Positions 1-35,187 of a stretch of DNA of 64,000 bases are shown in pieces. Source of the stretch: Lepidodermella squamata (Eukaryota; Animalia; Gastrotricha). The position numbers and the translations under genes are program-made. The stretch lies in assembly GCA_047495785.1 (NCBI GenBank), contig JBLDXI010000031.1:1-64000 (forward strand), in the 5' to 3' direction. The notes beneath the pieces were generated by a model that was not told where the DNA came from, did no database searches, and saw nothing but the letters and a program-made list of their open reading frames with translations. Numbering within the stretch: position 1 is the stretch's first letter; every line of letters begins with the position of its first letter.

Positions 1-17
1 ACACATCTCGTGAGAGT
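1..17. other. Probable PacBio barcode remnant (bc1003 plus T overhang); not genomic
   Basis: ACACATCTCGTGAGAG(T) equals my recollection of the bc1003 barcoded overhang adapter. It sits at the start of the window, and the inverted-repeat match begins right after it. Confidence 0.8.
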
Positions 18-18
18 G

Positions 19-2342
19 TCCCCATTCTTCAAAACTTTGCAGGGTTAAAAGTTTTTAGTTTCGGATAAATAACACAATTTGTTATTTCAGGGTAAGAAGT
101 GACTTGCTTATCATGAACGTTGAAATTACACAAGTTAGAGTACTAGTGCTCGTCCTAGCTCTGATCAAAACTTGACTTCGAACTGATTAATTATTTGGAT
201 CATTTCATCTTCATGCTCATGCTTTTACAGGTCCGCAAGGCATCCAAGGCGGCGAGGGACCCAAGGGTGCGCAAGGCTCGAAGGGAGACCAGGGATCTCA
301 AGGCTCTAAAGGTGCCCAAGGCAGTCAAGGATCTAAAGGCGCTCAGGGTAAGACTTGAAATAACTTCCTACAGCCTCAGTATATTTTTTTCCATCCACTG
401 TAGGCTCGCAAGGATCCAAGGGCGATCAGGGTAGCCAAGGTTCGAAGGGTGCCCAAGGCTCCCAAGGATCTAAAGGCGCCCAAGGCTCGCAGGGCTCGAA
501 GGGTGAGCAAGGTAGCCAGGGCTCCAAGGGTGCCCAGGGTAGCCAAGGCTCTAAAGGACAACAAGGTATGTTTTCCGACTATTTTGCTTGCTACCTGCAA
601 TGTATTCCATATCACAGGCTCGCAGGGATCTAAAGGCGCCCAAGGCTCTCAAGGTTCAAAGGGTGCCCAAGGTAAACTTCAATCGGCATGACAGCGTCAG
701 GATTTCCATTACATAAATTTGTGTACTACAGGATCACAAGGTTCTAAAGGTGCCCAAGGAAGCCAAGGTTCAAAGGGCCAGAAGGGTGACATTGGTTCAA
801 CTGGACCGCAAGGATCGATAGGCTCAATCGGTACGGCTATTAATAACGCCAAATTGCAACAACATATTTTATTTCTTTTTTATTGCTACAGGACCTATTG
901 GCCCTATGGGACCTCAGGGTTCGAAGGGTGACAAGGGCGACAAAGGCGATCAAGGCTCGAAGGGCGCTCAAGGTTTGCTGGACAAAAACGTTTTTAACGC
1001 TTTCTACCCATTTTGTTTCGAAACAGGATCACAAGGTTCTAAAGGAGCCCTGGGAGCCCTGCTCTCCCTTAGATCCTTGCGAACCTGCAATGGAAAAGGA
1101 GTTAAGAAAGTACAGATATGGAGCGTAGTGCTAAACAAACCCTGAGCACCCTTCGATCCTTGGCTGCCTTGAGCTCCCTTGGAACCCTGGCTACCTTGTT
1201 CTCCTTTGCTGCCCTGAGATCCTGATAAACAATGACAAAGATTTTAAGACTGGCGGTATAAGTGCAGGGTTGTACCCACCTTGAGCTCCCTTAGAACCCT
1301 GGCTTCCCTGGGCTCCTTTAGAACCTTGTGATCCTGTTTCGAAACAAAATGGGTAGAAAGCGTTAAAAACGTTTTTGTCCAGCAAACCTTGAGCGCCCTT
1401 CGAGCCTTGATCGCCTTTGTCGCCCTTGTCACCCTTCGAACCCTGAGGTCCCATAGGGCCAATAGGTCCTGTAGCAATAAAAAAGAAATAAAATATGTTG
1501 TTGCAATTTGGCGTTATTAATAGCCGTACCGATTGAGCCTATCGATCCTTGCGGTCCAGTTGAACCAATGTCACCCTTCTGGCCCTTTGAACCTTGGCTT
1601 CCTTGGCACCTTTAGAAACCTTGTGATCCTGTAGTACACAAATTTATGTAATGGAAATCCTGACGCTGTCATGCCGATTGAAGTTTACCTTGGGCACCCT
1701 TTGAACCTTGAGAGCCTTGGGCGCCTTTAGATCCCTGCGAGCCTGTGATATGGAATACATTGCAGGTAGCAAGCAAAATAGTCGGAAAACATACCTTGTT
1801 GTCCTTTAGAGCCTTGGCTACCCTGGGCACCCTTGGAGCCCTGGCTACCTTGCTCACCCTTCGAGCCCTGCGAGCCTTGGGCGCCTTTAGATCCTTGGGA
1901 GCCTTGGGCACCCTTCGAACCTTGGCTACCCTGATCGCCCTTGGATCCTTGCGAGCCTACAGTGGGATGGAAAAAAATATACTGAGGCTGTAGGAAGTTA
2001 TTTCAAGTCTTACCCTGAGCGCCTTTAGATCCTTGACTGCCTTGGGCACCTTTAGAGCCTTGAGATCCCTGGTCTCCCTTCGAGCCTTGCGCACCCTTGG
2101 GTCCCTCGCCGCCTTGGATGCCTTGCGGACCTGTAAAAGCATGAGCATGAAGATGAAATGATCCAAATAATTAATCAGTTCGAAGTCAAGTTTTGATCAG
2201 AGCTAGGACGAGCACTAGTACTCTAACTTGTGTAATTTCAACGTTCATGATAAGCAAGTCACTTCTTACCCTGAAATAACAAATTGTGTTATTTATCCGA
2301 AACTAAAAACTTTTAACCCTGCAAAGTTTTGAAGAATGGGAC
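19..2342. repeat. ~1.03 kb near-perfect inverted repeat (arms ~19-1050 and ~1311-2342, ~260 bp spacer); likely chimera artifact
   Basis: The arms are reverse complements, introns included. The differences I saw are homopolymer-type indels (ccatcc vs gggatgg; gttctaaa vs tttagaaacc). Confidence 0.92.
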
Positions 2343-5300
2343 GAACCACGGCAAAATGAACAACAGAGATTAGGAATTTGTATGAGAAAGTTAATATGCC
2401 ACGGCATAAGCATACATGACCGCTGTTACTTCGGTCAATTTCGTAGAAAATAAAGACTAATTTTAATTCCCAAGAAAATTGTATGAGAATGTAGATAGAA
2501 TTCGGGCGGAATCATGAGAGGCTGCCGATAGATAGAAAGGAAAAGTAAGAGAGTGAAACAAACCTCGCGGACCGATAGGTCCAGCATTGCCCTTCGAGCC
2601 ACGGCTGCCCATAAGACCTCTCGATCCTTGGCTACCTTGTTCACCCTTCGAGCCTTGAGATCCTTGAGAGCCCTTAGATCCTTGGCTGCCCTGCTCACCC
2701 TTTGAACCTTGGCTTCCCTGAGCGCCCTTCGAGCCCTGCGAACCTTGTTCGCCCTTCGAGCCCTGGCTGCCTTGTTGCCCCTTCGAACCTTGAGAACCCT
2801 GAGCACCCTTTGAGCCTTGACTACCTTGGGCGCCTTTAGATCCTTGTGATCCTTGTTCACCCTTTGATCCTTGGCTACCTTGCGCTCCCTTAGAGCCCTG
2901 CGAGCCTTGCTCGCCCTTAGATCCTTGTGAACCCTGAGCTCCCTTAGAACCTTGAGATCCCTGAGAACCCTTTGAGCCTTGAGAGCCCTGAGCGCCCTTT
3001 GAGCCTTGGCTGCCCTGAGCACCCTTCGAGCCTTGAGATCCCTGAGCACCCTTTGATCCCTGCGGGCCTTGTGCGCCCTTGGATCCTTGAGAACCTTGAT
3101 CGCCTTTGTCGCCCTTGTCACCTGGATAAAAATTAAATAAATCAAAACGCAAAACAGCCAATGTTCGAAAACTCACCCTTGGATCCTTGTGGTCCCATAG
3201 GTCCGATGGGTCCTATGAAAAAAGAAGACATATCAAGTCAAATATCGATTATGGACATTGTTATCATACCGATTGATCCTTGCGGGCCTTGAGAACCTTG
3301 CGAACCGAGATCCCCTTTCTGGCCCTTGGAGCCTTGGCTGCCTTGTTGACCTTTAGATCCTTGCGATCCCTGAGCGCCCTTGGAGCCTTGGCTACCTTGC
3401 GCACCCTTGGAGCCCTGTGAACCTTGGGCACCTTTGGAGCCTTGCGAGCCCTGTGCGCCCTTCGAACCCTGACTGCCTTGAGCACCCTTGGAGCCTTGGC
3501 TACCTTGCTGACCCTTCGAACCCTGGGATCCTTGGGCACCCTTGGAGCCTTGCGAGCCCTGAGCACCCTTCGATCCTTGGCTGCCTTGTTCTCCTTTCGA
3601 GCCTTGACTGCCTTGAGCACCCTTCGATCCTTGAGAACCCTGAGCACCCTTAGATCCTTGCGATCCTTGAGCACCTTTAGAGCCCTGAGAGCCTTGGGCA
3701 CCTTTGCTACCCTGGGAGCCTGCAACAGATAACAAATGTACGCATGAATTGAAGGTTTGAAATGAAAAACATACCTTGTTCGCCCTTCGAGCCTTGTGAA
3801 CCTTGGGCACCCTTAGAGCCTTGATCACCTTTCTGTCCCTTGTCGCCTTTAGAGCCTTGAGAACCTTGACTGCCTTGTGGACCAGTCGGGCCTAGAAAAT
3901 TTCATTAGACATAAGAAAATTTGCCACGGAATTATAGTGAATTCCCTACCCATTGGTCCAATAGGTCCGATCGAACCTTGGCTGCCCTGGCTGCCTTTCT
4001 CGCCTTTAGATCCTTGTGAACCTTGTGCGCCTTTCGAGCCCTGCGAGCCTTGTGCGCCTTTCGAGCCTTGAGAACCTTGGTCGCCCTTTGAGCCCTGGGA
4101 ACCTGTTGAAAATATGCAGTAAAATCATGCATCTGTAAAAACATGGTAAAATAGCACAAACCTTGGCTGCCCTTAGACCCTTGACTGCCTTGAGCACCTT
4201 TCGAGCCCTGAGAGCCTGCATTGATAAAATGAAAAATAATCGAAAATGTTAGGGTAGAAACATACCTTGTTGACCCTTCGAGCCCTGGCTTCCTTGGTCT
4301 CCTTTGTCTCCTGCGCATAACAAAGAAATGGTCAAATCGATAAAATCAAAAGAAAATGAAACGTACCCTTCGAGCCTTGAGCACCCTTAGAACCTTGGGA
4401 GCCTGCCCAGAACAAAAAATATCATTAAGAGTTTCAGATCACTTCATTTGACAAACCTTGATCGCCCTTAGAACCCTTCGATCCTTGCGAGCCATGATCA
4501 CCTTTCTCACCTTTGGAACCTTGGCTTCCCTGAGCACCCTTTGAGCCCTGAGAGCCCTGAGCACCCTTGGAACCTTGAGAACCTTGCGCACCTTTAGATC
4601 CCTGACTGCCCTGCTCTCCTTTCGATCCTTGTGATCCTTGGGCACCTTTGGAACCCTGAGATCCTTGAGAACCTTTGCTTCCTTGGCTGCCTTGGTCTCC
4701 CTTTTGGCCTATAAAGAATTGAAAAATTAGCTCAAGAAATTAAATGAAGTTAAGAAAACGGACCCTTTGAACCTTGAGGACCCATTGGACCGATCGGACC
4801 TAAATAACAATGTCATGAAGAATCAATTATGGAATACACGTTTAATCCTACCGATAGATCCTTGCGAACCATGATCACCTTTCTCGCCCTTCGAGCCTTG
4901 ACTGCCTTGTGCACCCTTTGAGCCTTGGGAACCCTGAGCACCCTTCGAACCCTGTGAGCCTTGAGAACCCTTAGAACCTTGAGAACCTTGAGCGCCCTTT
5001 GATCCTTGACTGCCTTGAGCACCCTTGGAGCCCTGTGAGCCTTGAGCGCCCTTAGAGCCTTGCGAGCCCTGTTCACCCTTCGAACCCTGACTGCCTTGAG
5101 CACCCTTAGAGCCCTGAGATCCTTGCGCACCCTTCGAACCTTGGGAGCCTTGGGCACCCTTGGATCCTTGCGATCCTTGTTCACCCTTTGAGCCTTGAGA
5201 ACCTTGAGCACCCTTCGACCCTTGAGATCCCTGGGCACCCTTCGAGCCTTGGCTACCCTGTTCACCTTTACTACCCTGTGAACCTGTAAATACAAAGTAG

Positions 5301-8300
5301 ATTAAATTTCAAGAAAGACATTTCTTCCAGGCAAAGTTACCTTGTGCTCCCTTTGATCCTTGGCTTCCTTGAGCGCCCTTCGAACCTTGTGACCCTTGGG
5401 CTCCCTTGCTGCCTTGGCTGCCTTGGTCTCCCTTTTGGCCTGTAGGAATTCAATGATAAAATTTATAAATGCAAACGCGAGGAAACAACTCACCCTTTGA
5501 ACCTTGAGGACCCATTGGACCAATTGGACCTGCAAAAAGCGGGCATAAACTTATTTTTACGAAATTCATCTCAAGTCATACCGGCAGAGCCTTGCGAGCC
5601 TCGCGATCCCATCAATCCTTTAGATCCTTGAGAACCTTGAGCACCCTTGCTGCCCTGGCTACCTTGGGCGCCCTTCGATCCTTGAGAGCCTACAATCAAA
5701 TTGAATAATTAGAGATATGCAGAAATGACAAAATAATTATAAACAGACCTTGAGCTCCCTTCGATCCTTGACTGCCCTGATCACCCTTCGAGCCTTGGCT
5801 TCCGTGATCGCCTTTCTCGCCCTTGGAACCTTGGGCGCCCTTTGATCCTTAAAATTGAATCAGCATAATAAATGGCAGCTCTTAAGCAAGATTGTGACAA
5901 ACCTTGTGATCCTTGGCTACCTGTAGTGGTTGGAGAAGAAAACAGTTAAGGATTAGTGGCCAGGTCTTGAAAAAACAAACCCTTGGAGCCCTGAGAACCC
6001 TGATCACCCTTCGAGCCTTGGTTGCCCTTAGAGCCTTGATCACCCTTGCTTCCGAAAGCGCCTGTGAATAAAAAAGTTGAAAAACTTCAAGCCATCGAAA
6101 TCAAATTAGCGTACCTTTTTCGCCCTTTGAGCCTTGGCTTCCTTGGGCACCCTTCGAGCCTTGACTGCCCTGGGCGCCCTTTGAGCCTTGAGAGCCTTGG
6201 GCGCCTTTAGAGCCTTGCGATCCTTGGGCGCCTTTCGAACCTTGGGAGCCTTGTTCACCCTTGGAGCCTTGCGAGCCCTGAGCGCCTTTGCTGCCCTGAG
6301 ATCCTGCAAAATAAAATGTTCAATCAAATTCGAAAATAATTTCCATCACAAATAATGAATAATAGGGGAAACAGCTCAATCGACTTGCATACGTTTCTAA
6401 TATAATTGCCTATAATTGAGGAACTGCGAGCCATCCAAACAATATCTAGCCAAAATTAATCCTGCAAGTTATGGGAAATAATGATTCTCCAGGTTCACGG
6501 TGCCCAATGAAATAACACATGTTTTGGCAAACCAATGAAGAGACGCGATATCGAAAGGAAAAATCGCGTGAAATCGTGACGTTCTTACAATACAGCCACA
6601 CGATAGGTGGACCTCAAATTCGTACTAGCCAGGGTTAGAATTTCAGCGCAATAAGATACACTTATACAAATGCAATGCAAAACACACCTTGTGCTCCCTT
6701 AGAGCCTTGAGATCCTTGGCTGCCTTTCGATCCTTGCGAACCCTGATCGCCCTTTTGACCTGGAAAATTGAATGCGATACATTTTGAGGGAACGGTTTAA
6801 AGACTATATCGTGCATTACCTTTAGAGCCCTGAGGACCCATTGGACCGATAGGACCTAACGTAGAAAAATTAAAGCTGTTATCAGACTTATATTCGATTA
6901 CATTAGGTACATACCGATTGAGCCTTGGCTGCCTTGGTCTCCTTTTTGTCCCTTCGAACCCTGAGAACCTTGTGCGCCCTTAGACCCTTGGCTACCCTGA
7001 GCACCCTTTGAACCCTGAGATCCCTGAGCACCTTTAGAACCTTGCGATCCCTGGGCTCCCTTCGAACCTTGAGATCCTTGGGCACCTTTAGAACCTTGGC
7101 TACCTTGTGCTCCCTTGGAGCCCTGCGACCCTTGAGCACCCTTCGAGCCTTGGGAACCTTGCTCGCCCTTAGAACCTTGGCTACCCTGAGCACCCTTCGA
7201 GCCCTGGGAGCCTTGGGCACCCTTTGAACCTTGTGAGCCTTGAGCCCCTTTAGATCCTTGCGATCCCTGTTCACCCTTTGAACCTTGAGAACCTTGGGCG
7301 CCTTTAGATCCTTGAGAACCCTGAGTGCCTTTCGAGCCTTGCGAACCTTGCTGGCCCTTGGAACCTTGCGACCCTTGAGCACCCTTGCTACCTTGGCTAC
7401 CCTGCTCCCCCTTCGATCCCTGAGAGCCTTGAGCGCCTTTCGAGCCTTGCGATCCTTGTGCGCCTTTCGAACCTTGGGAGCCTGAAATCAAAAATATAGA
7501 ATTCATTTCTTCGCTAACAGTTACAAGTCGGAAACCTCACCTTGGCTTCCTTTCGACCCCTGGCTGCCTTGATCACCCTTTTGTCCTGGAAAACAAGACA
7601 TGCAGAAAGAGCAAGAAAACATGTTTAAACGTACCTTTGGAACCCTGAGGACCCATGGGGCCAATCGGGCCAATTGAACCAATAGAGCCTTGAGAACCGA
7701 CTTCTCCCTTGTCCCCTTTCGAGCCCTTAGATCCTTGGGATCCCTGTGCGCCCTTGGATCCTTGTGAACCTTGAGCGCCCTTGGATCCTTGCGAACCCTG
7801 AGCCCCCTTGGAGCCTTGGCTACCCTGAGCACCCTTAGAACCTTGCGAACCTTGAGCGCCCTTGCTGCCTTGGCTACCCTGAGCACCCTTAGAACCTTGC
7901 GAACCTTGATCGCCCTTGCTGCCTTGGCTACCCTGAGCACCTTTGGAGCCCTGCGATCCTTGTGCTCCCTTCGACCCTTGGGAGCCTTGAGCGCCTTTGG
8001 ACCCCTGAGAACCCTGTGCACCCTTTGATCCCTGTGAGCCTTGGGCACCTTTAGATCCTTGAGAACCCTGTTCACCCTTAGACCCTTGCGAGCCCTGGGC
8101 ACCTTTCGAACCTTGAGTGCCTTGGGCACCCTTGGATCCTTGTGAACCTGCGGGGCAAAAAAGATATATTCCAGCATTACTTGTAATTGTGAAACCTACC
8201 CTGCGCGCCCTTGGAGCCTTGAACACCCTGAGGACCCTCTGAACCTTGCGGGCCCATTGGACCGATGGGACCACGTGAACCTAGAAAATAAATATAAATT

Positions 8301-11300
8301 AGGGAATTGGTAATTGGTGAGCCAATAAAAACATACCGATTAGACCTTTAGATCCCATCAATCCTAACAAAAACGCGAGTATATTAGAAGAAACACTCAT
8401 TGTTAAAATTGAACCAACCTTGCGCTCCTTTAGAGCCTTGGTCGCCTTTATAGCCTTTAGAGCCTTGAGAGCCATGATCACCCTTTTCACCCTTCGAACC
8501 TTGCGAACCATGGTCACCTAAAATTCAAGTTGAAAGTGAACATAGTATGTTGATTATATTCTTATCTTACCTTTAGATCCTTGGACACCTGGAATCAGAA
8601 ATTTATACAACATAATAATTCGGATGTAATTATCAATCCAAATATCTCACCCTTCGATCCTTGGGCACCTTTGGAACCTTGACTTCCCTGGTCTCCTTTG
8701 TCACCTTTAGAGCCTTGACTTCCTTGAGCACCCTTGCTCCCTTGGCTGCCCTGTTCGCCTTTGGAACCTTGAGAGCCTTGGGCTCCCTTAGATCCCTGGG
8801 AACCCTGAGCACCTTTCGATCCCTGAGATCCTGTTAAATGTTGAAAATCATCGTTATGAAATTCTAAGAGCATAAATTATGCACATACCTTGAGCGCCTT
8901 TGGAGCCTTGGCTACCTTGAGCGCCCTTGGAGCCTTGAGAGCCTTGCTCACCCTTAGAACCTTGAGAGCCTTGGGCACCTTTAGAACCTTGGCTACCTTG
9001 AGCGCCCTTGGATCCCTGAGAGCCTGTTTGGTGAAATTCATTATCTCGGAGTTTTCAAAACCAAGCAATTCATACCTTGATTTCCCTTGGATCCTTGATC
9101 GCCTTTGTCGCCCTTTGTTCCTGAAATGAAATATTTAGAAGAGAAACAGGAAGTTATGCAAATGACTGACCTTTAGAGCCTTGTGGACCCATGGGACCAA
9201 TAGGTCCAATAGAACCGATGGAACCCTGCGGACCGATGTCTCCCTTGTTGCCCTTGTCACCCTTTGAGCCCTGGCTTCCCTGAGCGCCCTTGGATCCCTG
9301 ACTGCCTTGCGCACCCTTCGATCCTTGACTGCCCTGAGCGCCTTTAGAGCCCTGGCTACCTTGAGCACCCTTGGAGCCCTGTGAGCCTTGTTCGCCCTTG
9401 GAACCTTGGCTACCTTGTTGGCCCTTCGATCCCTGAGAACCTTGAGCACCCTTGCTGCCTTGGCTGCCTTGTGCGCCCTTTGAACCCTGGCTTCCCTGAG
9501 CGCCCTTTGAACCTTGCGATCCCTGAGCACCCTTCGAACCCTGGCTACCCTGAGCCCCTTTGGAACCCTGTGAGCCTTGGGCACCTTTAGAGCCTTGAGA
9601 GCCTTGGGCTCCCTTAGAGCCTTGGCTACCCTGAGCACCCTTTGAACCCTGCGGGCCCATAGGACCAATTGGACCGATCGATCCTTGCGAACCTTGGTTG
9701 CCCTTGTCGCCTTTGTCGCCCTTCGATCCTTGCGAACCTTGTGCACCCTTCGAACCCTGGCTACCTTGGTCACCTTTTTGACCTTTAGAGCCCTGAGAAC
9801 CTTGAGCGCCCTTGGATCCTTGGTTACCTGTTTGCAAATGTACAATTTAAAAACAGATTTTCATAACCATTGTATCTCACCTTTCGAGCCCATAAGACCT
9901 TTCGATCCTTGAGACCCTTGATCTCCTTTGGTTCCTTTGCTACCCTGGCTGCCTTGGTCACCTGTTAAGTTAATCATTCGTAAAATTAACACAGCATCAG
10001 TAGGTAATTGATTTCTTACCTTTAACGCCCTTAGATCCCTGGCTACCTTGAGCACCTTTGGATCCTTGCGATCCTGTAATAAAACACATTTTAGGATCAC
10101 AAACTATCAAGCGTAGAAAATCTTACCTTGAGCGCCTTTAGAGCCCTGAGAACCTTGCGCACCCTTAGATCCTTGAGAGCCTTGGGCACCTTTGGAGCCC
10201 TGGCTACCCTGAGCTCCTTTAGAGCCTTGCGAGCCTTGTTCACCTTTGGATCCCTGCGAGCCCTGAGCACCCTTGGAACCTTGAGAGCCCTGGGCACCTT
10301 TGGAACCCTGGGAGCCTTGGGCACCCTTCGAGCCTTGGTCTCCTTTTTGTCCTTTGGAACCCTGTGGGCCTAAAAAAAAAGCAGCAAAAAATTAGCTCCA
10401 TTCAGTTCACTAAAACAAATCCACTCACCCATGGGACCAATTGGGCCGATCGAACCAATATCACCGTCGTGGCCTGTTGAACACAAATATTAGTAAAAGG
10501 CATTTGCAAGAGATTGCTTTAATCTCACCTTTCTGACCTTTCGAACCCTGGCTTCCTTGGTTACCTGGTAAATTAAAGGAATGAGCAAAGTGAAATAGTT
10601 TATTCAGACACATACCTTTGTTGCCCTTGGAACCTTGGTCTCCCTGGTGGCCCTTCGATCCTTGGGAGCCTGGATAGAAATAAAGCAATTTGAGTAATCA
10701 AAAAGCGCATTATTGAGATGCGCCTACCTTGAGCACCCTTGGATCCTTGGCTTCCTTGTGCGCCTTTCGAGCCTTGGCTTCCCTGGGCACCTTTGCTGCC
10801 CTGAGAGCCTGTGAAAATAGATAATAATTGCTAGAAATTTAGAGAAAATAATAGATATTTCATACCTTGGGCACCCTTGCTGCCTTGACTGCCCTGGGCG
10901 CCTTTAGATCCTTGGCTTCCTTGTACGCCTTTAGATCCTTGATCACCCTTTAGGCCTTTGCTGCCCTGGGAGCCTTTAAAACGAAGATGATGTAGAACGC
11001 GGAAATAAATCATTATAAAACAAACCCATGTCACCCTTGGAGCCAATATCGCCTCGGCCACCTTTCGATCCCCACGGACCCTCAGGACCTAAGTAGAATC
11101 ATTTTTTTTATGACGAAAGCTATTTTATAATAGAAAAAATCACTCACCAATAGGACCTTCGAAGCCGCGATCTCCCTTCGTGCCTGGTAAAAAAATCAGC
11201 ATGCAGGTTCGAAAAAATTAAAATAATAAAATTTAAACAAACCAGGACAACCGTTCTTTCCGTTCAGACCAGCTTCGCCTGACGACGCCAGAAATATATT

Positions 11301-13513
11301 GAATCGAATACCTCATCGGTGAATTTCAAGTTACCTTTCGATCCTGTTTAATACGGAAAGGATGCATTCAATAGACAATTTATTCAGATTATCATGTTAA
11401 CTTACCATCGATACCAGCGTCACCTTTCGCACCCTTATGACCAGGAGCGCCAGGGCAACCTACGAACCAAATCAAGCAGGTGATTAGCCCATTTCAGGCG
11501 GAAACAACCGTACCTTCTTGACCCTTAACACCTGCGCACAAAAATAAGCAGTTCAGCCAAAATCATTACACGGCAGTGATGAAAATTACCTCCTTCACCA
11601 GGCGTTCCTTGATCTCCTTTGTCACCCTTGGAACCCTGGGTGCCGGCACTACCGGGGGTGCCATCAGTACCGTTAAAACCAGGTGTGCCGTTTTTTCCAT
11701 CGCAACCAGGTTCTCCCTTTGGACCTATCAAGGTAAAACCAAAGTGAATAAACGCTGTATTTTGGCGCAGTGTAACAAACCAGGACCGCCGGGTGTACCG
11801 GGTCTGCCGTCAACGCCCTTGTAGCCTTTGAAATTGATAATACATTAAACAGAGCCTTTTTCTTGGTAAAACCACATACCATCGATACCCTTGGTTCCGT
11901 TCACACCGGCATCACCCTTGGAACCTAAAGAAGAATAAAATAATCACACCAAATCATCAATGACAAGCAAAATGTGTACCTTTTGGACCTGAAGGACCAG
12001 GGCAACCTGTTCGAAAATGTTGCGTAGAAATTGTTAACAGGTACATGTTTACTTCAACTTACCTTCATTGCCTTTGTAACCTGAGAGAAAAAGAGACGAA
12101 AAATAGACATTCAATTGCTGGCAAATCAATAATCAATATTGTAGAGGATTATGGTTAGTATGGTAAGTAATATTGGTAAGTACACGAGAGACAGCATCGA
12201 TAATTTCAAGCACTAAACGTATTAGAGCGTCAATTCAGCTAGACTTAGGCATGAACACCACTAGCTCATCATTCAAGTTAGAGGAAGTCAATCTCTGACA
12301 CTACCGAGTAAACGTCGATCTTGGCAACTGACAATTTTGAAATTTAGCGCGCATATTTGGTTTCAAGGTGAAAATTTTTTAATTACAACTTTTTATGACA
12401 TTAATAAATTAAATAATTTGTATATTACATTTTTAGTTTTTTATGATAACAAATGTCCGCAGCATTTTTGAAGAAAAAAAGATAACCCGTGTTGCAGGTT
12501 GAGCGGTTTTGGCTTGACCTCTTAGGTTGAACGTTTTAATTTAATTTTTTTTGTTACAGCCTGATATTTCATTAGCAGGGGAAAGATGATTAGGATACTA
12601 TTTTCAGATGCTTACCGTCAACACCGGGTCTTCCGTCGTTTCCTTTGTCACCCTTTCCACCCTTCTCGCCACCAATGTTGTTGCGGCAGTACCACATCGT
12701 GTATTGGCAGTAAGTTTTGACGTTGTCCTTTGTTAAGCAGTCCATAGTCGTAGACAAAAAGTCAGTTACCGGCTCAGCAATAAAGCCCAGCGGACAGCGC
12801 GCTTCGTTGTTAGCGGCAGCATTCCCAATTGGTTGGCAGGGGTGACCCGGTGCTAGACCAGCACACGAATCACAGGTTGAGAAAACACCACCGAACTCAT
12901 CTTGCGGGCCAGAATAATTGTAGCAGACCCTGAAGTAACAAGTTTGCAGCGGGGCTGAGTTGACAGCGTCGCTATAGCGACACAGCATCGGGAAAGTTGT
13001 TGATACGTAATTCGGCCCACAGTCCGTGACGTTGGTATTGAAGCAATTGACAGTTGTATTTCGGCCATTGTTCAACACCGTGAAGAATACCGCAGAGCCG
13101 AAATTCGGATCACCTTGCGCACGCCAGCACCCAGCCATGCTGCTCATACAGTATTGGGTTGAGGAAGCGAAGCGGGAGTACGGCCACAAGGAGGTCGAGG
13201 ACAGCGATCTCCTCGTATCAGGCGGACACATGAAGCTGCTCATGTAGGAATTGTGGTACCCGCCTCCTTGATTGCCAGTGCATGCGCTTGTTCCGGTCGT
13301 ACTGAACGATGTCGTTTGAGAGAAAAAGCCGGCAAAGTTTGAGATAGCTCGCCGTTCTCGATGCAGCTGATGCGAGAACGTCGGCAGCAAGTCGATATCA
13401 TCTCCCATATCGCCTAATGCTTCGGCACGGGCTGATGCTGCCTTGGCACTGGCGAGGAAACCGGCGAGTAACAATACCAATATCATTGGCAACTCCCCGG
13501 GTGAAATTGCCAT
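1051..13513 (-). CDS. Secreted collagen-like protein: signal peptide, furin site, Cys-rich N-terminal domain, very long (GSQGSKGAQ)n Gly-X-Y region; dozens of exons; 3' end not in window
   Basis: Exon 1 (13513 to ~12615) reads [25 protein letters not shown]...RERR then ~16 Cys, then [10 protein letters not shown]. Downstream exons are Gly-X-Y blocks separated by ~50-60 nt GT-AG introns. Confidence 0.92.
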
Positions 13514-14964
13514 TGTGTAACGCAAAAACAAACTGAGTATATGCTGCTTTGGGTTTTATGGTTAAAATAGAGCTATATCTACTAAAACGAAATTATTTAA
13601 AATGATAAAAAATAAAACTGATTGGTGTGAATGAAATTTGTTAGGTTGATAACGTGACGGCACGCGTTTCGGCTATTCCGTGAAAAACGCAATTGTTGCG
13701 CACCGGGGCCGATCGAGACGCGTGCCACACGCGATTACTTGAAAAAAACACTTAGTAGCACTTGTTTACAAAGTTTTTCCGAAAACAGGACACGAAGAAA
13801 AAATTATTCGAAAAATGAGTAAAAAAATACATGAATAAATTGGTAATTCTTAAAAAGCGGATTTATCGGCAATATATTTTTTCCTAAATTTTTTGAAATT
13901 TTTCCCATTTATATTGATTGGAAAATGTAATAATTCGTATTTACTTTCATAATACATAACGATTTCCGGGTGGCACGCGCCCAAGATGGTAACAGGAAAA
14001 CAACAAGGTAGCATCCGGTGTCTTAGTCTGGTTCATTATCAATTCTAATCAATGTCTCGAGCGGGTCATTATTTTTCACCTCCCTCTTTTTACCCTATCG
14101 TTGGTGGTTGAAATCTTACACGGCAACAATATCCTATTTTATTTTAAAAGAAGCAAGAGCCAAGCCGGCAATATTGGCTTGAGAGGAAAATTTATCGCAT
14201 AAAATATAATCCCGGCTATCAAGAATTAATTACGATAAATTGCTGCGAAAATGTCGACCTCATCGTCAATATTAATTCAGCTTGGATAATATTAAAAATA
14301 TATAAATATTGCTATTTTAGAGATTTTATTTCGAAAATATAACGTGATTCAGCGGGACTCAGCGGGAAGCGGGAGCCCTATAGAGCATTTTTCGAGATAT
14401 TTCCGAAGAATCGGGGGAAAAGCAGTAGCGATAAGGCGAAGCGGCACGATTTTCCGTTAAAAAGCGCGGTTGTGCGAAGTTAATAAGGTTAAACTGGGTC
14501 ATGATTGCGTTTTGTAAAGATGCTGGAAAGTTTTGGAGGTTAAAATGAAAACATTGAAACCAATATGTATTTTTTGCTGTGAAATGAGCAAATTCATATC
14601 ATTGATTTTTTCCAAAACAAAATTCCGCACGCGCTTGCGTAAGGGCAGTTTCCATTCATGATGCAGGTATATATGAAAGGAAAATCAAATTTTGAAAAAA
14701 TCTTGAAAATAGATGGATTGCCAATAGGTCAACCTAAGTCAGCGGATTTTTCAAAGAATACTATTTTTTCAAGGTTCTAATTTGTTTCATTTTGCATAAC
14801 AAGTAGATCTTACTATTCCGCGCATATTGGCTAAACAGTTATATTCCACCTTGATATCGATTCAGGAATCGATTTAAAAAAATCAGCGATTTTTCGATAT
14901 AGCTCTACCAAATTTTATCTAATATGATGGAAGGCGGATGAAATAAAATCTAAGACAATGATTC

Positions 14965-16804
14965 TCAAACAATTACGCTCCGCTTAGGTAAAAAAACCGC
15001 GGCCGGCTGGAACCCTTTCCAACCGCATTGGCGCTTGAACCCTGAACCGATCGCTTGCAATAGAAAAATAGGACCATCCCCCTTGATAAACAAATTTAGT
15101 TTTCCAGCGTTGGTTGTAACATACGATTTTTTGATGTTTTGCTCGGAAGTGAAAGTGAATTTCGCGCTGGTTTGGACAAAATTCAATACAATAGAGAATA
15201 AATCGAAATTTCCGTTTTATATAAATGCGCGCGCGCCTCAAAGCCCATAAGGTGCAAACTGATAATGACGCCAAAATAACAGTCATATGATTATGTAATA
15301 TGTAATCATCAACTATGAAAAATTATAGGTTGATATCAATTATCTGAGTTTATTAGACCTTGAAATCGAAAGCTGAAGTGTATTTGATAATATTACCGGA
15401 CTCCAGCTGAAAATTAGGGGGGAGGGGGGCGAATCGCAAAAATTTAGAGAAACATTTCGGATTATCATTTTAGATTAGCCCGATTTTGCTGGAAATTGTA
15501 TTAAAATTTTGGGAAATCCCTTTGAATAATTCGGCCGGCCGCATGAGGCTTTTAGAACGAGGCTCTCTGCTCGGGGTTTGAGAATCGCTGTGATAAGAAA
15601 ATAATGCCGAAATCAAACAAAAATCGAAAATCTATTTATTGATGGATTCTCAAAATGGGTGGTTAAAATAATTAGACCCGATAATATTCTGCTAAAACCT
15701 TTGGGGAATATTTACGAGAACTAAAAACCCGAAGGTTCAGATTTAGGGGAAATTAGAAGTTGGAACCTTACATTTGAGGCATGCCAAACTAAATGATATT
15801 TTTCAAGTGAAATAACCTAAATTTCGATGAAATTCGGTAACTCTGTACAGCTACTAATTTTCGGTGGTCACTGCCTACAAATAAGAACCTATCAATGCAG
15901 TAATAAATACCCGAAATTACCCGAAATAAATTGCCGAGATTTCTCTACCGAAAGGTGTTGTGGAAGAACTGAAGAAGATTTTTATGGAATAAAATACAAA
16001 TTGAAACGAAAACTTCGATCGGGCACGTGTATGTTTTCGCAAAAAAGTGAAACCGAGCCAATGAAAAAATCAATCGTTTTATTCATTATTTTATTCACGT
16101 TGATCGCGTGCTTCAAAACAACAATACAGTAAAAACGGCCATTTTTTAGCGCGCTTTTTCTTGTTATTATCGCGCATCCTGTTACACGCGCACGTAATTT
16201 GTTTGTGTGATATTTTTGATTTCGACTTGTTTTCATTACAGCTGCTGCTAGTAACCGAATTCGAACCAATTTGATGCTGGCAGCAATCTTCATCGGGCAG
16301 CGTTTCGTAAATTCCCGAATTCTCCACCGCGATTTGATCTCGAACAATTTGAAGCGTTCGCTTATCAGGTAGAATATCGAATAGCAGCGCTGGTTTGTGT
16401 AACGATAAATGAGCTGGCGGTAGTTCGATCGCGTAAATTTGCCCGGTTTTCATCGACGGCTTCAGCCCGAAATTGCCCGGCGATCGGTTTTCAACCTGTT
16501 TCGGCCGGAAAAATCCCATCGCCTGGTTGTTAAGGTAGTTTGCCATTGCGAAGTCAGCGTAAGACGGCCGGAAAGCTAAAGCTGGGCCGAATTGCGGCTG
16601 AACTGGGGTAATTAAAAACGGCTGCCGGTGATGATGATTTGACGCTGATTTTTTGCGAAATCGCCGCGGAACCGGCGCGGATTTGTTCGATGATGAATTG
16701 CACGAGCTACAGCACGAACACGACGATGTTGTAGTAGCGGTGTAATAGGCGTTAGGGTGCCTAGTTAACGGGTTGAAAAACCGGTCCGTATCTGCTGACG
16801 GCAT
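14965..16804 (-). CDS. Unknown two-exon protein; the C-terminal part may be a divergent alpha-crystallin/HSP20-like beta-sandwich
   Basis: The 237-aa ORF 16091-16804 can splice (GT after ...WPFL at ~16130 to CCAG at ~15168) in frame into ORF 14965-15186 (LAKFTFTSEQNIKKSYVTTNAGKLNLFIKG). The fold assignment is only a pattern impression. Confidence 0.5.
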
Positions 16805-19483
16805 ATTTTTCGAAACAGGTGTTATTATTGTTGCGATATATCACAACGCGAGTGATTTTGTATATTGGCTAGCATATAGGCCGTGCCTCTCGCGCTGTGT
16901 CAAAAACAAGCAGTTGAATAAACAAGAAAATTGATGACACCAATAATGTACTATTATTATTATTATCTACTCCTTCGCGCTCATCAACACGCATATTTGA
17001 CCGGAAAATACACACGTACAGGGTGGACACAACGCTCATCGCGAAAACCAGTTTGTTCTGAACGGATATTTTCGATAGCCGTATAATGTAATGAAAAATA
17101 TCATATAAAAGGCAAATGCGTAAGCTCTACTGTTAGATCCGCCGCAATTATTGGACCGTTCGAGTGGAATTCCGCTTTCTACAGCCGCTTAAAAACAATT
17201 GCGAGCAGTGCTGATAAAAAATTATTTTCTGACTTTAAATTCGCTTTTTTATGCAGAGTGGCCAATGTGAATTGTGGAATTTTATCATCGCCATCAGCTA
17301 ATGAGACTTGCCGGCTCATTATTCCTCGTCATTGAGTTTAACAACTTTTCTTTTCACTGAAATGAGATCTTCCGAACGAATTAAACATCGATACGTACAA
17401 CAAATTTTTCCGTAATTCGCTATATTTTTTATTACGTACTACCCGGACGCTGATGAGTTGTTTACCGGTAATTTCGTTGCAAAAACACGTTTATTCAGGC
17501 ACGCGCTGCCGAAATCACGTGCGAAATCACTTGCGAGTCCGAAAAACACTGGAATGAACTAAATAATTTTTGCCGCGAGAAATGACGCAAGTCGGTCTAT
17601 AATGTACGATTAACTGTCACGCGGTCTCATCTCGGATCTCGGACAGAAAAAAAAGTGTTATTTGGGCTTTCGTTTTTTATTATGAATGAGTTTTAAAATG
17701 ACCTCGTGGACATGTGAATGGCCGCGTAAGGGAAAGGGGGTTTTGATAGCGTGAGATTTTGATGCCACTCTCAGGATCACTGAAAGAGGAGTCGAACGAT
17801 ATCAAAAAATACGCTGATAGTCAACAGAGCCGCTGCAAAGAAAATGGGCTTCAAAGTTTAAAAAAAGTTGATGGAATCAAAAGCTAGGGTTTCTACAACA
17901 ACCGGAATCGATAAGCCTTTTGGGCAACACGTTGGGCTTTGCCGTATGTTAAGAAGGATGGGAGCTGCCTAGAGGTCTGAAATTCCAAATCCTCAAGAAA
18001 GCCTGAGTGGGAACCATAGAAAACGAAGTGGGAAATATTGGAAAAGACCCTCTACAGTCAACACCCTTTTTCCATTTTGCTAGAATATACGGAAAATTTC
18101 GCCAGTCCCCACTTTTCACTGTCAAATTCAAAACGAACTTTAAACTAAAATACAACCCTTGAAAAAGCGCGCCTTCGCAAGTTGAGAGAATTAGTTGGAC
18201 ATTTTCGGATTTAGAGAAGATCTGAGAAAAATTTGACTAAGCCACATGTTTCATCTCGGATTTCTTGATGGAAAACTGTTCTTTGGAATGTATGTAACAG
18301 GTCCATAGGATATTCCTTTTATAATTCTTCAGGAATATGTTCAAAGCTTTCTCTAATAAAATAAACATACATATTTCCCGCGGGCCAAGCCTCTAGAACC
18401 TACTCAGTAAAACCTGAAGTTGATAACAGAATTCCAACGGAATGTGTGTTGAAAGTGCAGTTATTTTTTCCTATTCACTGGAAATCGCATATAAAATCCC
18501 TTAGCGAACGTGGAACTTGTGACTATGTTCTGCCGGAAACCTTTTGCATGCATCAATTCAGCGGCTCAAGAAACAATTTTAAAGTTGTGAAACGTCACCA
18601 TATTTAGGCGTCCAAGTTTTAGAAAGCGACGTGCCCGAACCCCCAAACACTCCATACACGATATACCAGTTGCTCTATGATGATCAGACCTGGTCGCGGC
18701 GAAACAAATCAGTTCAACCATCGGATCTGGACGAATCCACAAATATCAAAGGACTCCTCAGTCGGTTGAAACCTGAGCGGATGGTGGCATTTTGAAAATT
18801 TAAAACGTCGAAAATTTTGTGAGAACTTTCTGATCTTACTGAGCTTACTTGATAGTAGCAGACCAGCACAGAGCCAAACCGCGCAGCTGCACTAAGGTAA
18901 GCCTGCGGAAAGTAAAACCTCTCGAACAAAATCGAAAATTGAAAAAATCGAGAGTTGAAAAACCTGCGGCGGGTATTAAATAATTCAATAGGTAGAAAAT
19001 GTTCATTATATTTTATAATTAAGTTCTTATAATAAAAATAACCCAAATTGTAAAAAACCTTTAGAATTTAGATCCGCGATTCGAAGATGAGGCGCGAGAA
19101 AAAATACGACCACGTTCCCTTCCGCGATGGAACCGGCAGCTGACCGGCTCTGGACCTAACGCGAAGCCTAGTGTCATCTGAATTGATGACGCCGGGTGCC
19201 TGCTTGTCTCTTCTTGTACCTCGTACAGTTGCTTACTGCTTACTGCTGAAGTTGCCTCGCAAAACGGTACAGGTCGGGGGAAGAGGAGCATCATATTTCG
19301 AAATCCCTATTGCCTGCGATTCCACTTCTGCCTCCGCGTTGGCGCGGTATGCATTAGTTTTGCAACTTCGATAAAATCTCGGCCGTGTAAAACATGTGGC
19401 CTAATCGCGTGGAGTAGTACTTCTCAAAACTCTGGTGTTATCAAGCGATAATCCTCTTTTTGCTAGGGAATTAACCGTAAAGT

Positions 19484-23642: not shown

Positions 23643-26600
23643 ATGGCAGATGATGCCGCAAAGGACTTGCCATTTCGAGCCGAATACGCGAAAAGTGGCC
23701 GGGCAGGGTGTCGCGGGTGCAAGGAAACTATTTCTCAAGACTCGCTACGCCTCGCGGTCATGATCCAGAGCCCGCATTTCGACGGGAAAATGCCCAATTG
23801 GTACCACTACGCGTGTTTCTGGAAGAAAGCTCGAGTTCAGAAGACAGAAGATATTCACGGGTTTCACTCACTGCGGTGGGAAGATCAGCAGAAAATTGAG
23901 AAGCAAATCGGAGGAGGTGGGGCCGCGGGTGGAGATGCGGCTGCCTCGTCCGGAAAAGGCAAAGGCAAGGGCAAAAAAGGCGCCGCGGCAGCAGCAGCTG
24001 TTGATGATTCCGGGACACGAGATTTTAAGGTGGAATACGCGAAATCAGGCGGGTCCAAGTGCCGCGCTTGCGAGGAGAAAATTCCGAAAAATGAAGCTCG
24101 GTTAGGGAAAATGGACTACGAGTCTGACCAGGCGAAGATGTACGGACCTCAGGTGAGAATATTAAACTGAATTTAGCCGACTTTCGATAGCTGCTCTTCA
24201 AAACCGCTAGGCATTTTAATTATGAAATATATCAATAGGGCTTAACGGCGAATTATCCGCTCATTTACGCCGATCCTTGCAGTTGTTAATTGTTTAAATC
24301 GAAAATAATTTTGGTAAAATTTCAAAAAAATTTGAATCGCACAAATCTAATTCTGATTTCGGAAATGCTAAAAAATGTCAGATTTCTCGAAAAACTTGAT
24401 CGAAAATTTTTCTGATACGACTACTTTCAGAATCAATCAATATTTACTTGTTGGGTTTTATCTATTGAATCGTAATTTAACTGATTTTTCAGACTCTGTG
24501 GCACCACGTTCAATGTTTTGTTGATAAACGCGTCGATCTCGGCTTCACGACTGAATTGAATGTCGAAACGTGCGCCGGATTTGCGCAGCTCGAGAAGGAA
24601 GACCAACAGCGACTGGTCACCCTACTCGGCAAGGGCGAGTCATCGCGGCCGAAAAGTGTCACAAATCAGGATAAAGAGGACGGCAAGAAGTCGTCGAAAA
24701 AACGCAAGGCCAAGGACGAGCCGGATAACGAAGATTCGATCTCAACAACATCGACCGCGGTCGAGAATAAAAAAGCAAAGGACGATGTCGCCGAGCAACT
24801 CAAGTTGCAGAATAAAGAAATCTGGGAAGTTCGCGATAAATTACAAAATTCAGATTTGAGCACGCGAGATATGAAAGAATTGCTCGAATTCAACGACCAG
24901 CACGTGCCTGAGGCCGGGAAATTGATCGAACGACTCGCTGATTGCCTGCTATTCGGCGCTTTAGCCCTGTGCCCTGAATGTAAAAAGGGTCATTTAGTCC
25001 ACTCAGATACGTGCAATGCCTATCGTTGCACTGGTCAAATGACTGAATGGGCGAAATGTGCCTATCAAACTAAGACCCCGAAACGGAAAAAGATGGTATT
25101 TCCGGACGACCTCAAAGAATCGGTTGATATTTTCAAAAAATATAAATACAAAGCGAGAGAGCGAATTTTCCCGCCAGATCGCGTTAATCCCGTGAAAAAG
25201 GAGGAGGCTACTTCGAAAACTGACGATTCGAAACCGTTATCTCTGCTGAAATTTGTTGTCAGTGGTCGAATGACACGGCCTGTCAACGAATTGCGCCAGG
25301 CTTTGAGTAATTTAGGCGCTACAATAGCCGCTGATGTCGATGGCACGGTCATCGCCCTGGTCACGAGCTCAGCTGAGGCGAAAAAAGGCTCGGCGAAATC
25401 GAAAATAATCCAATCAGCCGAAACTGCCGATATCCACGTTGTCGGCGAGGAATTTATCACCGAAGTCCTTGAAGTGGCGAAAAATTCGAAATTGAAAGTT
25501 GTTGTTCAAGACCCGGGTCAACCTGCAGACCCGGTTCCGGACGGATTCACCAATTTGGCTGATTTGATTGTGAAACATCAGATTGTGCCGAATTGCGGTG
25601 GTAATGTCAATTCGAGGATTCGGTTGAATTTGGCGAAGTCGATGGGTATTGTTGCGAAATCAACTGCGGCGTTGAAATCGGGCCTGAAATCGGATTATAA
25701 AAGCGGCCCAGAAACGAAAAAGTTCAAGGTCAAAGGCCGCTCGGCCGTTGATCCAGACTCAGGTTAGTTCATTTTTTGAAAAAATATTTAAAAAAAGAAA
25801 TGTCGGAACATTTTACGCGAGAATATGTAATTGGTATAAATTTTCAGGAACAAAATTCAAGAACAAAAAAAATGTCTGAATCTAAGATTTAAATTAATTT
25901 TTGCAATTCCAAAACTAAAAAATTGAAAAAAATTATTATTTCGATTCAATTAATTTTTCGTAAATACGAAACCGAAACAATAGGTATTCTTTTTAGCCAT
26001 TTTGTTGCCTTTTTCAAGTAATCTCGCGTCTCGCGTATTATTTTCGGTCACATCTTCGGACTATTCGATACAGGCGGCGGTCAGAATAGCCGATCGTCGC
26101 CTCACTTTGCGTCCGTACATCAATTTTTCACGGCTTGAAAAGCCAACTTGACTACAAAGTCGATCGGTCGTTACCGTGGCCGAACGGGACAGATTTCAGT
26201 TGGACATTACATTTTCTCGTTAAATTCTTTTCCTAGGTTTGGACGACGAAGCTCACGTGCTGGAAGAAGGCTCTTGCATTTGGAATTGCGTCCTCAATTT
26301 GGTATCGATCGAAAACAAAATGAATTCCTACTACAGGCTACAATTGATAGAAAGCGACACCAAGTAAATTTTGTGATTTTTTTCCTCATTTTTTTTATAA
26401 TTTATTCCGAATTTTATCAGGAAAACTTGGTGGGTTTTCCGAGCTTGGGGTCGAATTGGCACAACCATTGGCAGCAACAAACTTGAGAGGTACTCGAGTA
26501 AGGACAAAGCCAAGGATAATTTCGAAGAGGTGTTTCTTGAAAAAACCGGCAATCCGTGGAATAAGGGCGCGTTTTCCCGCCAGAAAATCCCAGGCCGCTT

Positions 26601-29600: not shown

Positions 29601-30437
29601 TAAATGATGGAAGACATCCCCCAGCGGGCTTAATTCCAAAAAATAACCTATTTATTATCTAAAAAATGTCCAAAATTGAAAATGGTATGCCCATTTTAGC
29701 GAATAAACGCCTAATTTTTCAATCTTGAAATTTTGAACTCTTCTGGAATTTTTTTACCATCTTGATGAAATGTTGATAATTTTTAGGTCTAAGGATCGCG
29801 CCTCCTGAAGCGCCGTCGACTGGTTACATGTTCGGAAAGGGCGTTTATTTCGCCGATATGGTCTCGAAATCGGCGAATTACTGCTTCACCTCGGCTATGA
29901 ACAACACGGGCCTGTTGCTGCTATCAGACGTGGCTCTCGGAAATCCTCACGAGGTTCTACATGCGAAGAGCTTCAGCAAAGCGCCTCAGGTATTTATTCA
30001 AGATGCTAAGGCTGAAAATGTATCGAAAATTGAAATACAGAAAAAATGAGGAGGATTTTTTAATTTAAAGTTTTTTTGAAATCCCAAATTTTTTGAACGT
30101 GATTTTTGAATTATCACTCGAAATATGGTTTTTCGAGTTTCACATCTCTAAAATATTTTCTCATAATTTCGATTTTCGTACTTGAAATGTAATTTTTTGT
30201 GTTTTATTCCAGGGATTTCATTCGGTCAAAGGCTGTGGCATGACGTGTCCGGATCCGAATGGCGCCGCCCAGTTGCCGGTGGCTGACGCCGGTTACGAAA
30301 TCACGGTGCCCTGTGGCAAGCCCAAACAGTCGGGCGCTGCTGGATCGTCGCTGCTCTACAACGAATTCATCGTGTACGACGAGGCTCAAATCCGCCTGCG
30401 CTACCTGCTGAAACTCGACTTCAAATACAGCGTTTGA
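23643..30437 (+). CDS. PARP1: Poly(ADP-ribose) polymerase 1 (Zn1-Zn2-Zn3-BRCT-WGR-HD-ART), 7 exons
   Basis: [13 protein letters not shown]...WYHYAC, second finger [74 protein letters not shown] (H-Y-E triad intact). Exons ~23643-24152, 24493-25762, 26237-26363, 26421-26817, 28700-29219, 29787-29989, 30213-30437. Confidence 0.97.
27170..27375 (-). mobile_element. Fragment of a Tc1/IS630-type DDE_3 transposase
   Basis: Frameshifted SFN...[37 protein letters not shown] resembles the segment after the first catalytic Asp of DDE_3 transposases. Confidence 0.5.
27740..28650 (-). mobile_element. Degenerate Ty1/copia retroelement 5' end (putative LTR, PBS, frameshifted gag) in a PARP1 intron
   Basis: Putative LTR starting TGTG at 28650. 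PBS GTTATGGGCTCAG (28519-28531) resembles the copia half-tRNAiMet PBS GGTTATGGGCCCAG. Gag-like NLAAWRNQM...SAVKCWNDV and [12 protein letters not shown]...FFATLP, with a degenerate zinc knuckle [10 protein letters not shown]. Confidence 0.7.
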
Positions 30438-34500: not shown

Positions 34501-35187
34501 ATTGCGATAACCTGGCTATTAGGCAGTTTTATTAGTCTTTCGCCCCTATACGCAACTGCGATGGTCCCTGAGATTGATTTGAGAGAGGAAGAAACCAAAT
34601 TGAGAAAATGAGAAAAAATTTAACCAGAACTATACAGAAGCTATGTGGTAGTATCGGTGTGATCTTGGCGTGTAATAAATATCAAGTAATTAACAATTGA
34701 AAAATTAGTTAGAAATTTTTTTTTCGAAAATCTCACAATTGAATCAAATTTAGGCTCGGAACACAAGAAATGCATACATACTTAGTTAACTTTTATGAAT
34801 ATTTTTTTAGGCTTGGAAGATGAAGCCCACGTCTTCGAAGAGGACGGCTGTGTCTGGAGCGTTTTACTCCATTCAATCCCCGAGGTGAGCCTATCGAATT
34901 TCTACTACCGAATCCAACTGTTCGAATCCAACGACAACGCCGTATGGTGGGTCTACCGGTCGTGGGGCCGCGTTGCCACCGCCATTGGCTCGACCAAGCT
35001 CGACGTTTTCGACTCGAAAGACGCGGCTAAGCGCAATTTCGAGGAGGTTTTCACGGATAAAACCGGCCTCGAGTGGAATAAGGGGCAATTTTCGGCTGAA
35101 CGCATCGTTGGCCGGTACTACCCTATCGACGAGACGGACGTTGAAACGCCGCAGACGGACGAGCCGCAAAAAATGGCCGTTGACTGA
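31516..35187 (+). CDS. PARP1 paralog without catalytic domain (Zn1-Zn2-acidic linker-BRCT-WGR), 6 exons
   Basis: [13 protein letters not shown]...YFHFSC, GYARSRGSRCRAC...YHHIRC, Glu-rich linker, BRCT (LRFFIAGRM...DVHVVGE) and RSWGRV. TGA at 35185-35187, AATAAA at ~35333. Confidence 0.85.

Follow-up and report, generated by a model that had tools for sequence, protein, structure and literature searches.

How can an animal collagen hold a triple helix when proline is nearly missing from it? Animal collagens are generally held to require proline and 4-hydroxyproline for a stable helix, and the known exceptions to the hydroxyproline need are proteins of bacteria and viruses and a vent-worm cuticle collagen with glyco-threonine. 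The question is raised by a collagen gene at the start of contig JBLDXI010000031.1 (C31) of the gastrotrich Lepidodermella squamata, which lies in the window analysed here (the whole stretch of 64,000 nt, C31:1-64000, beginning at the contig start), and which is found in complete form on a second contig of the genome, C48. Overall, the locus is read here as an intact gene for a secreted giant collagen whose rod holds without hydroxyproline and which folds from its C-terminal end, with a probability of about 0.6. With approximately 1,430 triplets and 1% proline at the hydroxylation position, the gene makes it directly testable by which other means an animal triple helix may be held.

Within positions 1051-11100 of the window, 47 pure Gly-X-Y exons encode 2,229 amino acids in 743 triplets. 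The X position of these triplets is occupied by Ser (59.6%), Ala (17.6%), Asp (6.6%) and Pro (6.1%), and the Y position by Gln (56.3%), Lys (34.6%), Ile (3.9%) and Met (2.2%). Proline amounts to 2.0% of these residues, all of it at X and none at Y. The interval contains 163 units of the nonapeptide GSQGSKGxQ, in which x is A in 120 units, E in 22, S in 8, Q in 7 and D in 4. Pfam Collagen (PF01391) matches two single exons with E values of 1.3e-33 and 3.6e-39, and the protein, judged by its sequence, is a member of the collagen superfamily. The original prediction of a nearly proline-free collagen with Ser at X and Gln or Lys at Y is thus confirmed, and the gene is a spliced animal gene with GT-AG phase-1 introns. 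In the full gene, the nonapeptide accounts for 65% of the helix (309 units), and the helix as a whole contains 2.8% Pro, 19% Ser, 19% Gln, 11% Lys and 0.6% Thr. Proline is found at Y in 14 of the 1,427 triplets counted (1.0%), and 12 of these 14 lie within the first approximately 200 helix residues, which are encoded by the collagen end of exon 1 and eleven short N-terminal exons. Furthermore, every Lys of the helix is in an X-Lys-Gly context (469 sites), and 163 KGE or KGD triplet pairs are spread over the full gene, 24 residues apart in the median. The GPIGPMGPQ motif occurs seventeen times in exact form, usually after GSI and before GSK-G(Q/D)K-GDQ; these motifs are nearly the only hydrophobic clusters in the helix and, lying about 190 residues apart, they cut the rod into blocks of 150-260 residues.

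In a six-frame scan of the window, Gly-X-Y runs appear on the minus strand, the coding strand of the gene, only between 1041 and 12670, and mirror-image runs appear on the plus strand at 230-980. The parts of the gene in the window are:

13514..13838, minus strand: region upstream of the ATG, 100% identical to C48; beyond 13838 the identity is 89-94%
12616..13513, minus strand: exon 1 (898 nt), with the ATG at 13513, the signal peptide, RERR at residues 52-55, a 16-Cys domain and the first 6 triplets
12081..12615, minus strand: intron 1 (535 nt), without coverage by the sequencing run X2
11026..12080, minus strand: eleven short N-terminal collagen exons of ordinary proline-containing composition
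1141..11088, minus strand: main helix, 47 Gly-X-Y exons mostly reading GSQGSKG(A/E/D/S/Q)Q, with Pfam PF01391 and phase-1 GT-AG introns
6820..6855, minus strand: 36-nt exon for a 12-residue motif; likewise at 5494-5529, 4764-4799 and 3177-3212

The gaps between the Gly-X-Y runs measure 40-51 nt and read G/GT...AG/G (slashes marking the exon borders), from which GT-AG introns of 49-62 nt follow, all splitting a Gly codon after its first base (phase 1). The collagen exons in the window all have lengths divisible by 9, the shortest measuring 9 nt and the longest 657 nt, and the GSQGSKGxQ repeat sets in from 10973 downwards. The gene had originally been placed at 1051-11100; spliced repeat exons on the minus strand indeed fill this interval, but the gene extends on to the ATG at 13513. 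Other frames of the repeat also hold long stop-free open reading frames (ORFs), at 2435-3145, 3264-3725, 4813-5295, 7521-8177 and 9135-9845 on the minus strand and with matching ORFs on the plus strand. They give peptides rich in Arg, Lys, Val and Leu and are by-products of the GGN-NNN-NNN periodicity rather than genes.

The complete gene occupies C48:645060-665847 and consists of 98 exons and 97 GT-AG phase-1 introns, which have a median length of 56 nt and fall in the range of 45-65 nt in 91 of the 97 cases. The exon models were all multiples of 9 nt, one of them later being re-read as 96 nt. Joined, they give one open frame of 13,959 nt encoding 4,652 residues; similarity searches were run exon by exon, and the joined model served for the frame check and composition. 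In-frame stops after splicing, which the original prediction had named as evidence against it, are absent, as the frame stays open across all 97 introns.

The copy in the window ends prematurely at about residue 2,669 of 4,652, because bases 1-1055 form an inverted fold-back at the contig start. Two features describe this contig end:

1..1055, no strand assigned: inverted fold-back, the reverse complement of 1305-2340, a probable assembly artefact outside the gene
1607..1616, minus strand: two errors in homopolymer length (+T, -C), by which the frame is lost over 10 nt; neither is present in C48 or in the fold-back arm

The arms of the fold-back are 100% complementary at 21-396/1965-2340 and 98% at 384-1055/1305-1976. 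At approximately position 1044 the coding strand becomes its own antisense, where C48 goes on with proper exons, and the plus-strand "exons" within 1-1055 are an artefact, given that this region is an inverted copy of 1305-2340. Apart from the two one-base errors at 1607-1616, window positions 1045-13838 are 100% identical to C48:644735-657528. The collinearity, in inverted orientation, continues over 1045-19400 and C48:638846-657528 with flanks that are 89-94% identical. In our reading, this end of C31 was left unpolished and is closed by a fold-back, and it belongs to one of two homologous regions that have diverged. The contrast between the 100% identity of the gene and the 89-94% of its flanks could mean that haplotypes were left uncollapsed, or that the region was duplicated long ago and underwent a haplotype switch or gene conversion. 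For the assembly, this means that a fold-back and a duplicated contig end are flagged on C31. The C-terminal exon of the collagen occurs once in the genome, on C48, and a search of the genome for paralogues yielded none save the identical C48 copy, with repeat DNA elsewhere giving only weak matches of about 100 nt. Matches to P4Ha_N are likewise paired, with near-identical partners, on C32, C38 and C112. At C48:642912-643160 lies a repeat roughly 250 bp long that contains inverted matches and is missing from the C31 homologue; it has more than 40 copies across contigs at 76-96% identity and is probably a miniature inverted-repeat transposable element (MITE).

A contig end of this kind, with its fold-back, its two frame-breaking homopolymer errors and a gene that is 100% identical to C48 amid more diverged flanks, may suggest that the repeat expanded like a satellite and has no function, that it is a pseudogene, or that it arose in the assembly. 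This explanation holds only for window positions 1-1055 and has next to no probability for the gene itself, as the C48 copy has one open frame and 97 canonical introns. In addition, the repeat units have the marks of age. The 195 exact GSQGSKGAQ units of the full gene are written in 188 distinct DNA versions, compared to 192.5 if codons are shuffled between units, and their mean nucleotide identity is 0.76. Adjacent units are as dissimilar as units more than 500 residues apart, and TCN and AGY Ser codons are both in use. Only 0.5% of the 31-mers recur in window 2400-8300. The mean identity from intron to intron is 0.548, compared to 0.539 for shuffled sequences, so that the array must be old; with saturated synonymous sites and mutually unrelated introns, it is not a recent amplification. 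Furthermore, an independent public DNA run (X1) carries the gene region, introns included, with 1-2% differences that are mostly intronic or silent. The 40 differences with the best support divide into 30 in 2,038 nt outside exons and 10 in 2,605 nt of exon, and nine of the ten exonic ones are synonymous. The collagen gene is therefore real and intact, and purifying selection on the peptide repeat is supported, in line with the earlier proposal that synonymous codon variation around a fixed peptide points to selection.

Expression was looked at in three runs, none of which is recorded as RNA. Run X2, the kind of which is only guessed as RNA, contains identical short pieces along exon 1. One X2 contig tracks exon 1 to 12642 and then continues in unrelated letters reading GDKGDSLNEA, which correspond neither to the genomic sequence nor to the exon predicted to follow; this contig may be chimeric or stem from a paralogous transcript.

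The encoded protein has a calculated mass of 434 kDa, a pI of 10.1 and a net charge of +301 per chain in its helix. From the N-terminus, it consists of a signal peptide, the RERR site, the 16-Cys domain, the main helix, a break, a second helix and the C-terminal end. The N-terminal part measures 281 residues, leader included, and is followed by a main helix of 1,328 uninterrupted triplets (3,984 residues). The single break has the sequence GAM-PPNNP-GIP, in which PPNNP are the five interrupting residues, and the second helix comprises 106 triplets (318 residues) with a run of about 20 GPQ. The protein ends in GPCGPPGPPGPPSAC and a short amphipathic helix, the C-terminal sequence being laid out as GKRGRRGHTGPCGPPGPPGPP-SACDDPRKLRKLVADLLNELLANVFDDSDEV...KI. 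At 0.286 nm per residue, a rod of approximately 1.2 micrometres (1.14 + 0.09) is predicted from the sequence alone. The N-terminal domain in exon 1 has a hydrophobic leader, 16 Cys and three N-x-S/T sites. RERR after the leader and RGRR before the C-terminal module resemble furin-type sites, at which the chain may be processed. No relatives of the N-terminal domain were found by a word search, an exhaustive phmmer search against 1.84 billion representatives, Pfam, PDB sequences, the ESM Atlas or JGI metagenome contigs. Similarly, Pfam gives no domain in the 64-residue C-terminal end, and both terminal domains are, by these sequence searches, orphan.

The C-terminal exon modelled as three copies gives a predicted ipSAE of 0.42, compared to 0.00 for the best control. 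Of the proteins solved as pairs of one chain, 21 of 30 reach the mark, compared to none of the 23 solved as single chains. At least 84% of the contacts are common between runs, and the partner pLDDT is about 60. The model covers just the last 26 helix residues of the collagen and the C-terminal helix. Its interface involves residues 4-29 with a collagen-type one-residue stagger and positions 32, 35-36, 39-40, 42-43 and 46 of the helix, where the contacts are heptad-like. The modelling supports trimerisation of the chains at the C-terminal end. Five other collagen genes of the genome (L011-L015) share this kind of final exon, composed of (GPP)2-4, sometimes a Cys, an amphipathic helix of 20-40 residues and a stop:

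C31:1687763, collagen gene with the shared final exon
C31:921387, collagen gene with the shared final exon
C31:747658, collagen gene with the shared final exon
C10:1006643, collagen gene with the shared final exon
C33:1552667, collagen gene with the shared final exon

The combination of (GPP)n and helix may be a lineage-specific C-terminal trimerisation module, and the gene points to a compact nucleation module common to several collagens of the genome. Nucleation at the C-terminus followed by zipping towards the N-terminus is the accepted folding model of collagens (PMC11923368), and the layout of (GPP)n and helix fits it.

Taken together, these features suggest how the rod could be built. 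The amphipathic helix, two Cys and a (GPP)3 nucleus would join three chains at the C-terminal end, most likely as a secreted homotrimer, and zipping towards the N-terminus would then yield the rod of about 1.2 micrometres. Gln at Y and Ser at X may hold this rod through hydration and hydrogen-bond networks, comparable to bacterial collagens, in which polar and charged residues provide stability in the absence of hydroxyproline (PMC8968730). The 163 Lys-Gly-Glu/Asp pairs could add salt bridges between the chains, to the benefit of register and kinetic stability, since KGE and KGD salt bridges promote folding and kinetic stability (PMC11923368). The cooperativity of the great length would contribute as well, and the GPIGPMGPQ-containing motifs may act as local X-proline or hydrophobic clamps or as sites of lateral assembly. 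Hydration, salt bridges, X-proline clamps and the C-terminal nucleus would be simpler explanations than the modifications proposed originally, since none of them calls for one. More specifically, an animal structural rod longer than 1 micrometre whose helix needs no proline hydroxylation, relying instead on a Ser-Gln/Ser-Lys/Ala-Gln code, Lys-acid salt bridges and a (GPP)3-helix nucleus, is a tentative proposal that we place somewhat below even odds. If true, hydroxyproline-independent collagen reaches beyond microbes, and the gene would serve as a natural template for recombinant collagen materials that need no modification. In the weakest step of the mechanism, the rod, strongly basic and globular at one end, would build an extracellular fibrous layer of the cuticle type, as in annelids. 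This is suggested because a micrometre-long rod with one globule matches descriptions of annelid cuticle collagen (PMC11766948), and a role in an apical or cuticle-type fibrous matrix is possible but doubtful. The label of a cuticle, adhesive or egg-case biomaterial is a guess.

A different source of stability is suggested by the same composition. The helix could be stable only once modified, by O-glycosylated Ser or hydroxylated and glycosylated Lys at Y, or the material could be hardened by Gln-Lys isopeptide cross-links. Ser and Gln (19% each) and Lys (11%) are abundant, and all 469 Lys sites have the X-Lys-Gly context that is used by lysyl hydroxylases. The genome contains four GT25-family genes, four transglutaminase-core matches and collagen prolyl-hydroxylase genes, and given these genes, modification and cross-links may act as an added layer. 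A precedent is the cuticle collagen of Riftia, a vent worm, with its galactosyl-Thr (Mann et al. 1996, as cited in PMC11766948 and PMC11923368). However, the Ser in question sits at X, whereas the known stabilisation by glyco-Thr works at Y, and similar bacterial and metagenomic collagens do without such animal enzymes (PMC8968730). The genome search also gave no lysyl oxidase match, though a control search was likewise matchless, so that absence is not proven. Obligatory modification, which is compatible with a secreted giant collagen folding from its C-terminal end, is therefore conceivable, with the odds leaning clearly against it.

Alternatively, the chains might form no collagen helix at all and act as a flexible, hydrophilic and polycationic Gly/Ser/Gln/Lys polymer that is secreted as a glue, a mucus-like gel or a silk dope and simply retains Gly at each third position. 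The very low imino-acid content and a net charge as high as +301 per chain are in keeping with such a polymer, and the helix is so far a prediction. A disordered polymer, however, has no need of a strict register, whereas Gly never lapses over 1,328 consecutive triplets here; moreover, the exons come in multiples of 9 nt, and the C-terminal end has (GPP)3, flanking Cys and a trimer-compatible helix. We consider a flexible polymer improbable.

Several points nevertheless weigh against the reading as a secreted giant collagen that holds without hydroxyproline. In host-guest peptides, neither Ser at X nor Lys at Y is more than a middling helix former. The KGE and KGD pairs are not enriched in the C-terminal quarter, unlike the trend described in PMC11923368. 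That the chains form a triple helix is a prediction from modelling, and the pass of the trimer model may reflect memory of solved collagen helices. The single-sequence AlphaFold model of the N-terminal domain is unusable at a pLDDT of 34. A transcript, the lack of which the original prediction had named as evidence against it, is only suggested, by run X2, which is guessed to be RNA: its pieces lie on exon 1, with none on the 535-nt intron 1 or in the upstream region, and no splice joint was seen among the three runs. Lastly, tissue and function are pure inference.

The surroundings of the gene bear on its origin, as its neighbours are animal calpain and PARP1 genes. The best named matches of the calpain are from a brachiopod, a nemertean, an annelid and a mollusc, at 41-45% identity, and rotifer and nematode spliced-leader sequences were looked for and are absent; the animal is probably a spiralian that lacks close annotated relatives. 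The window holds three PARP1-like genes in tandem at 23643-38241. A relative is present in four metagenome assemblies (L016-L019), in which a calpain that is 71% identical is followed by a single PARP1 and then by a Tho1/MOS11 gene; no collagen was found within 10 kb of the calpain and PARP1 of this relative. As the metagenomic relative holds a single PARP1, the triplication looks specific to the present lineage.

Compared to the established collagen classes, the gene stands apart in several respects. Like the fibrillar collagens (I-III, V, XI), it has a long unbroken helix and exon lengths that are divisible by 9 (45, 54 and 108 nt in the fibrillar genes), and folding would begin at C-terminal GPP triplets with nearby Cys. 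Unlike the fibrillar collagens, which have about 338 triplets, approximately 20% Pro + Hyp and a helix of about 1,014 residues with a COLFI propeptide, it has 1,328 + 106 triplets (3,984 + 318 residues), 2.8% Pro, phase-1 introns and neither a C-propeptide nor a Pfam domain at either end. Type IV collagens are defined by C-terminal NC1/C4 domains and many interruptions, whereas no C4 and a single 5-residue break are found here. With nematode-type cuticle collagens the protein shares only an RxxR-type site and terminal Cys, its N-terminal domain being without a Pfam match and its helix giant and uninterrupted. Collectins and collagens with an adjoining coiled-coil also place a short α-helical trimerising segment directly after Gly-X-Y, as is predicted here, but the present protein has no lectin or globular head after the helix, and its helix is about 40 times longer.

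The protein also resembles the cuticle collagens of annelids and vestimentiferans (Riftia, Alvinella, Arenicola; Gaill et al. 1995 and Mann et al. 1996, as cited in PMC11766948). These have a micrometre-long helix with a globular domain, and a helix of 1.14 + 0.09 micrometres with a 281-residue N-terminal domain is what the sequence predicts here. Further likenesses are a spiralian host, which the present animal probably is, an unusual composition and a helix held by other means than hydroxyproline. The chemistry differs from the annelid type, which is marked by glycosylated Thr or a Hyp-rich composition: glycosylated Thr stabilises the helix of Riftia, whereas Thr amounts to 0.6% and Y-proline to 1% here, and Y is occupied by Gln and Lys.

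In composition, the nearest counterparts are found among bacterial and phage collagen-like proteins (Scl1/Scl2, BclA; PMC8968730) and metagenomic ORFs, which likewise have no hydroxyproline, are rich in polar and charged residues and commonly have Gln or Thr at Y. Three metagenome loci (L021:2542-9759, L020:3664-8625 and L027:4639-9840) hold unspliced collagen-like ORFs of 1,654-2,406 amino acids with 0-0.3% proline, and are presumably microbial or viral. Their triplets are GSQ/GTT/GST, GIQ/GDQ/GLK and GAQ/GDK/GQK. Triplets of GSQ, GAQ, GDK and GQK are frequent among them, and L021 has 773 triplets within one unspliced ORF. Since such metagenome contigs include collagen-like genes of a single ORF in which GSQ is the commonest triplet and proline makes up 0.1%, the helix part might have been taken from a microbe or virus, with introns invading later. 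The identity to these sequences of 41-56% is, however, the level of any Gly-X-Y pair, and a scan of metagenomes with the repeat gave no better identity and no nonapeptide array. In addition, the microbial genes are unspliced, have other trimerisation domains and lack a GSQGSKGxQ array, whereas the present gene has 97 phase-1 introns, calpain and PARP1 as neighbours, and a signal peptide and a furin site of animal type, and it shares its C-terminal module with other collagens of the genome. Microbial or viral acquisition is accordingly very improbable. The repeat itself has no described counterpart: 2,293 generic collagen matches in protein databases include none with the nonapeptide in series, and the literature search gave no text with GSQGSK and no relevant proline-poor or proline-free collagen, so that a described family with this repeat, which the original prediction had named as evidence against it, was not found. 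The proline-free GSQ/GAQ collagens of metagenomes mean that the compositional strategy is already known outside animals; what is new, as far as the sequences compared here indicate, is such a composition in a giant, intron-rich animal collagen.

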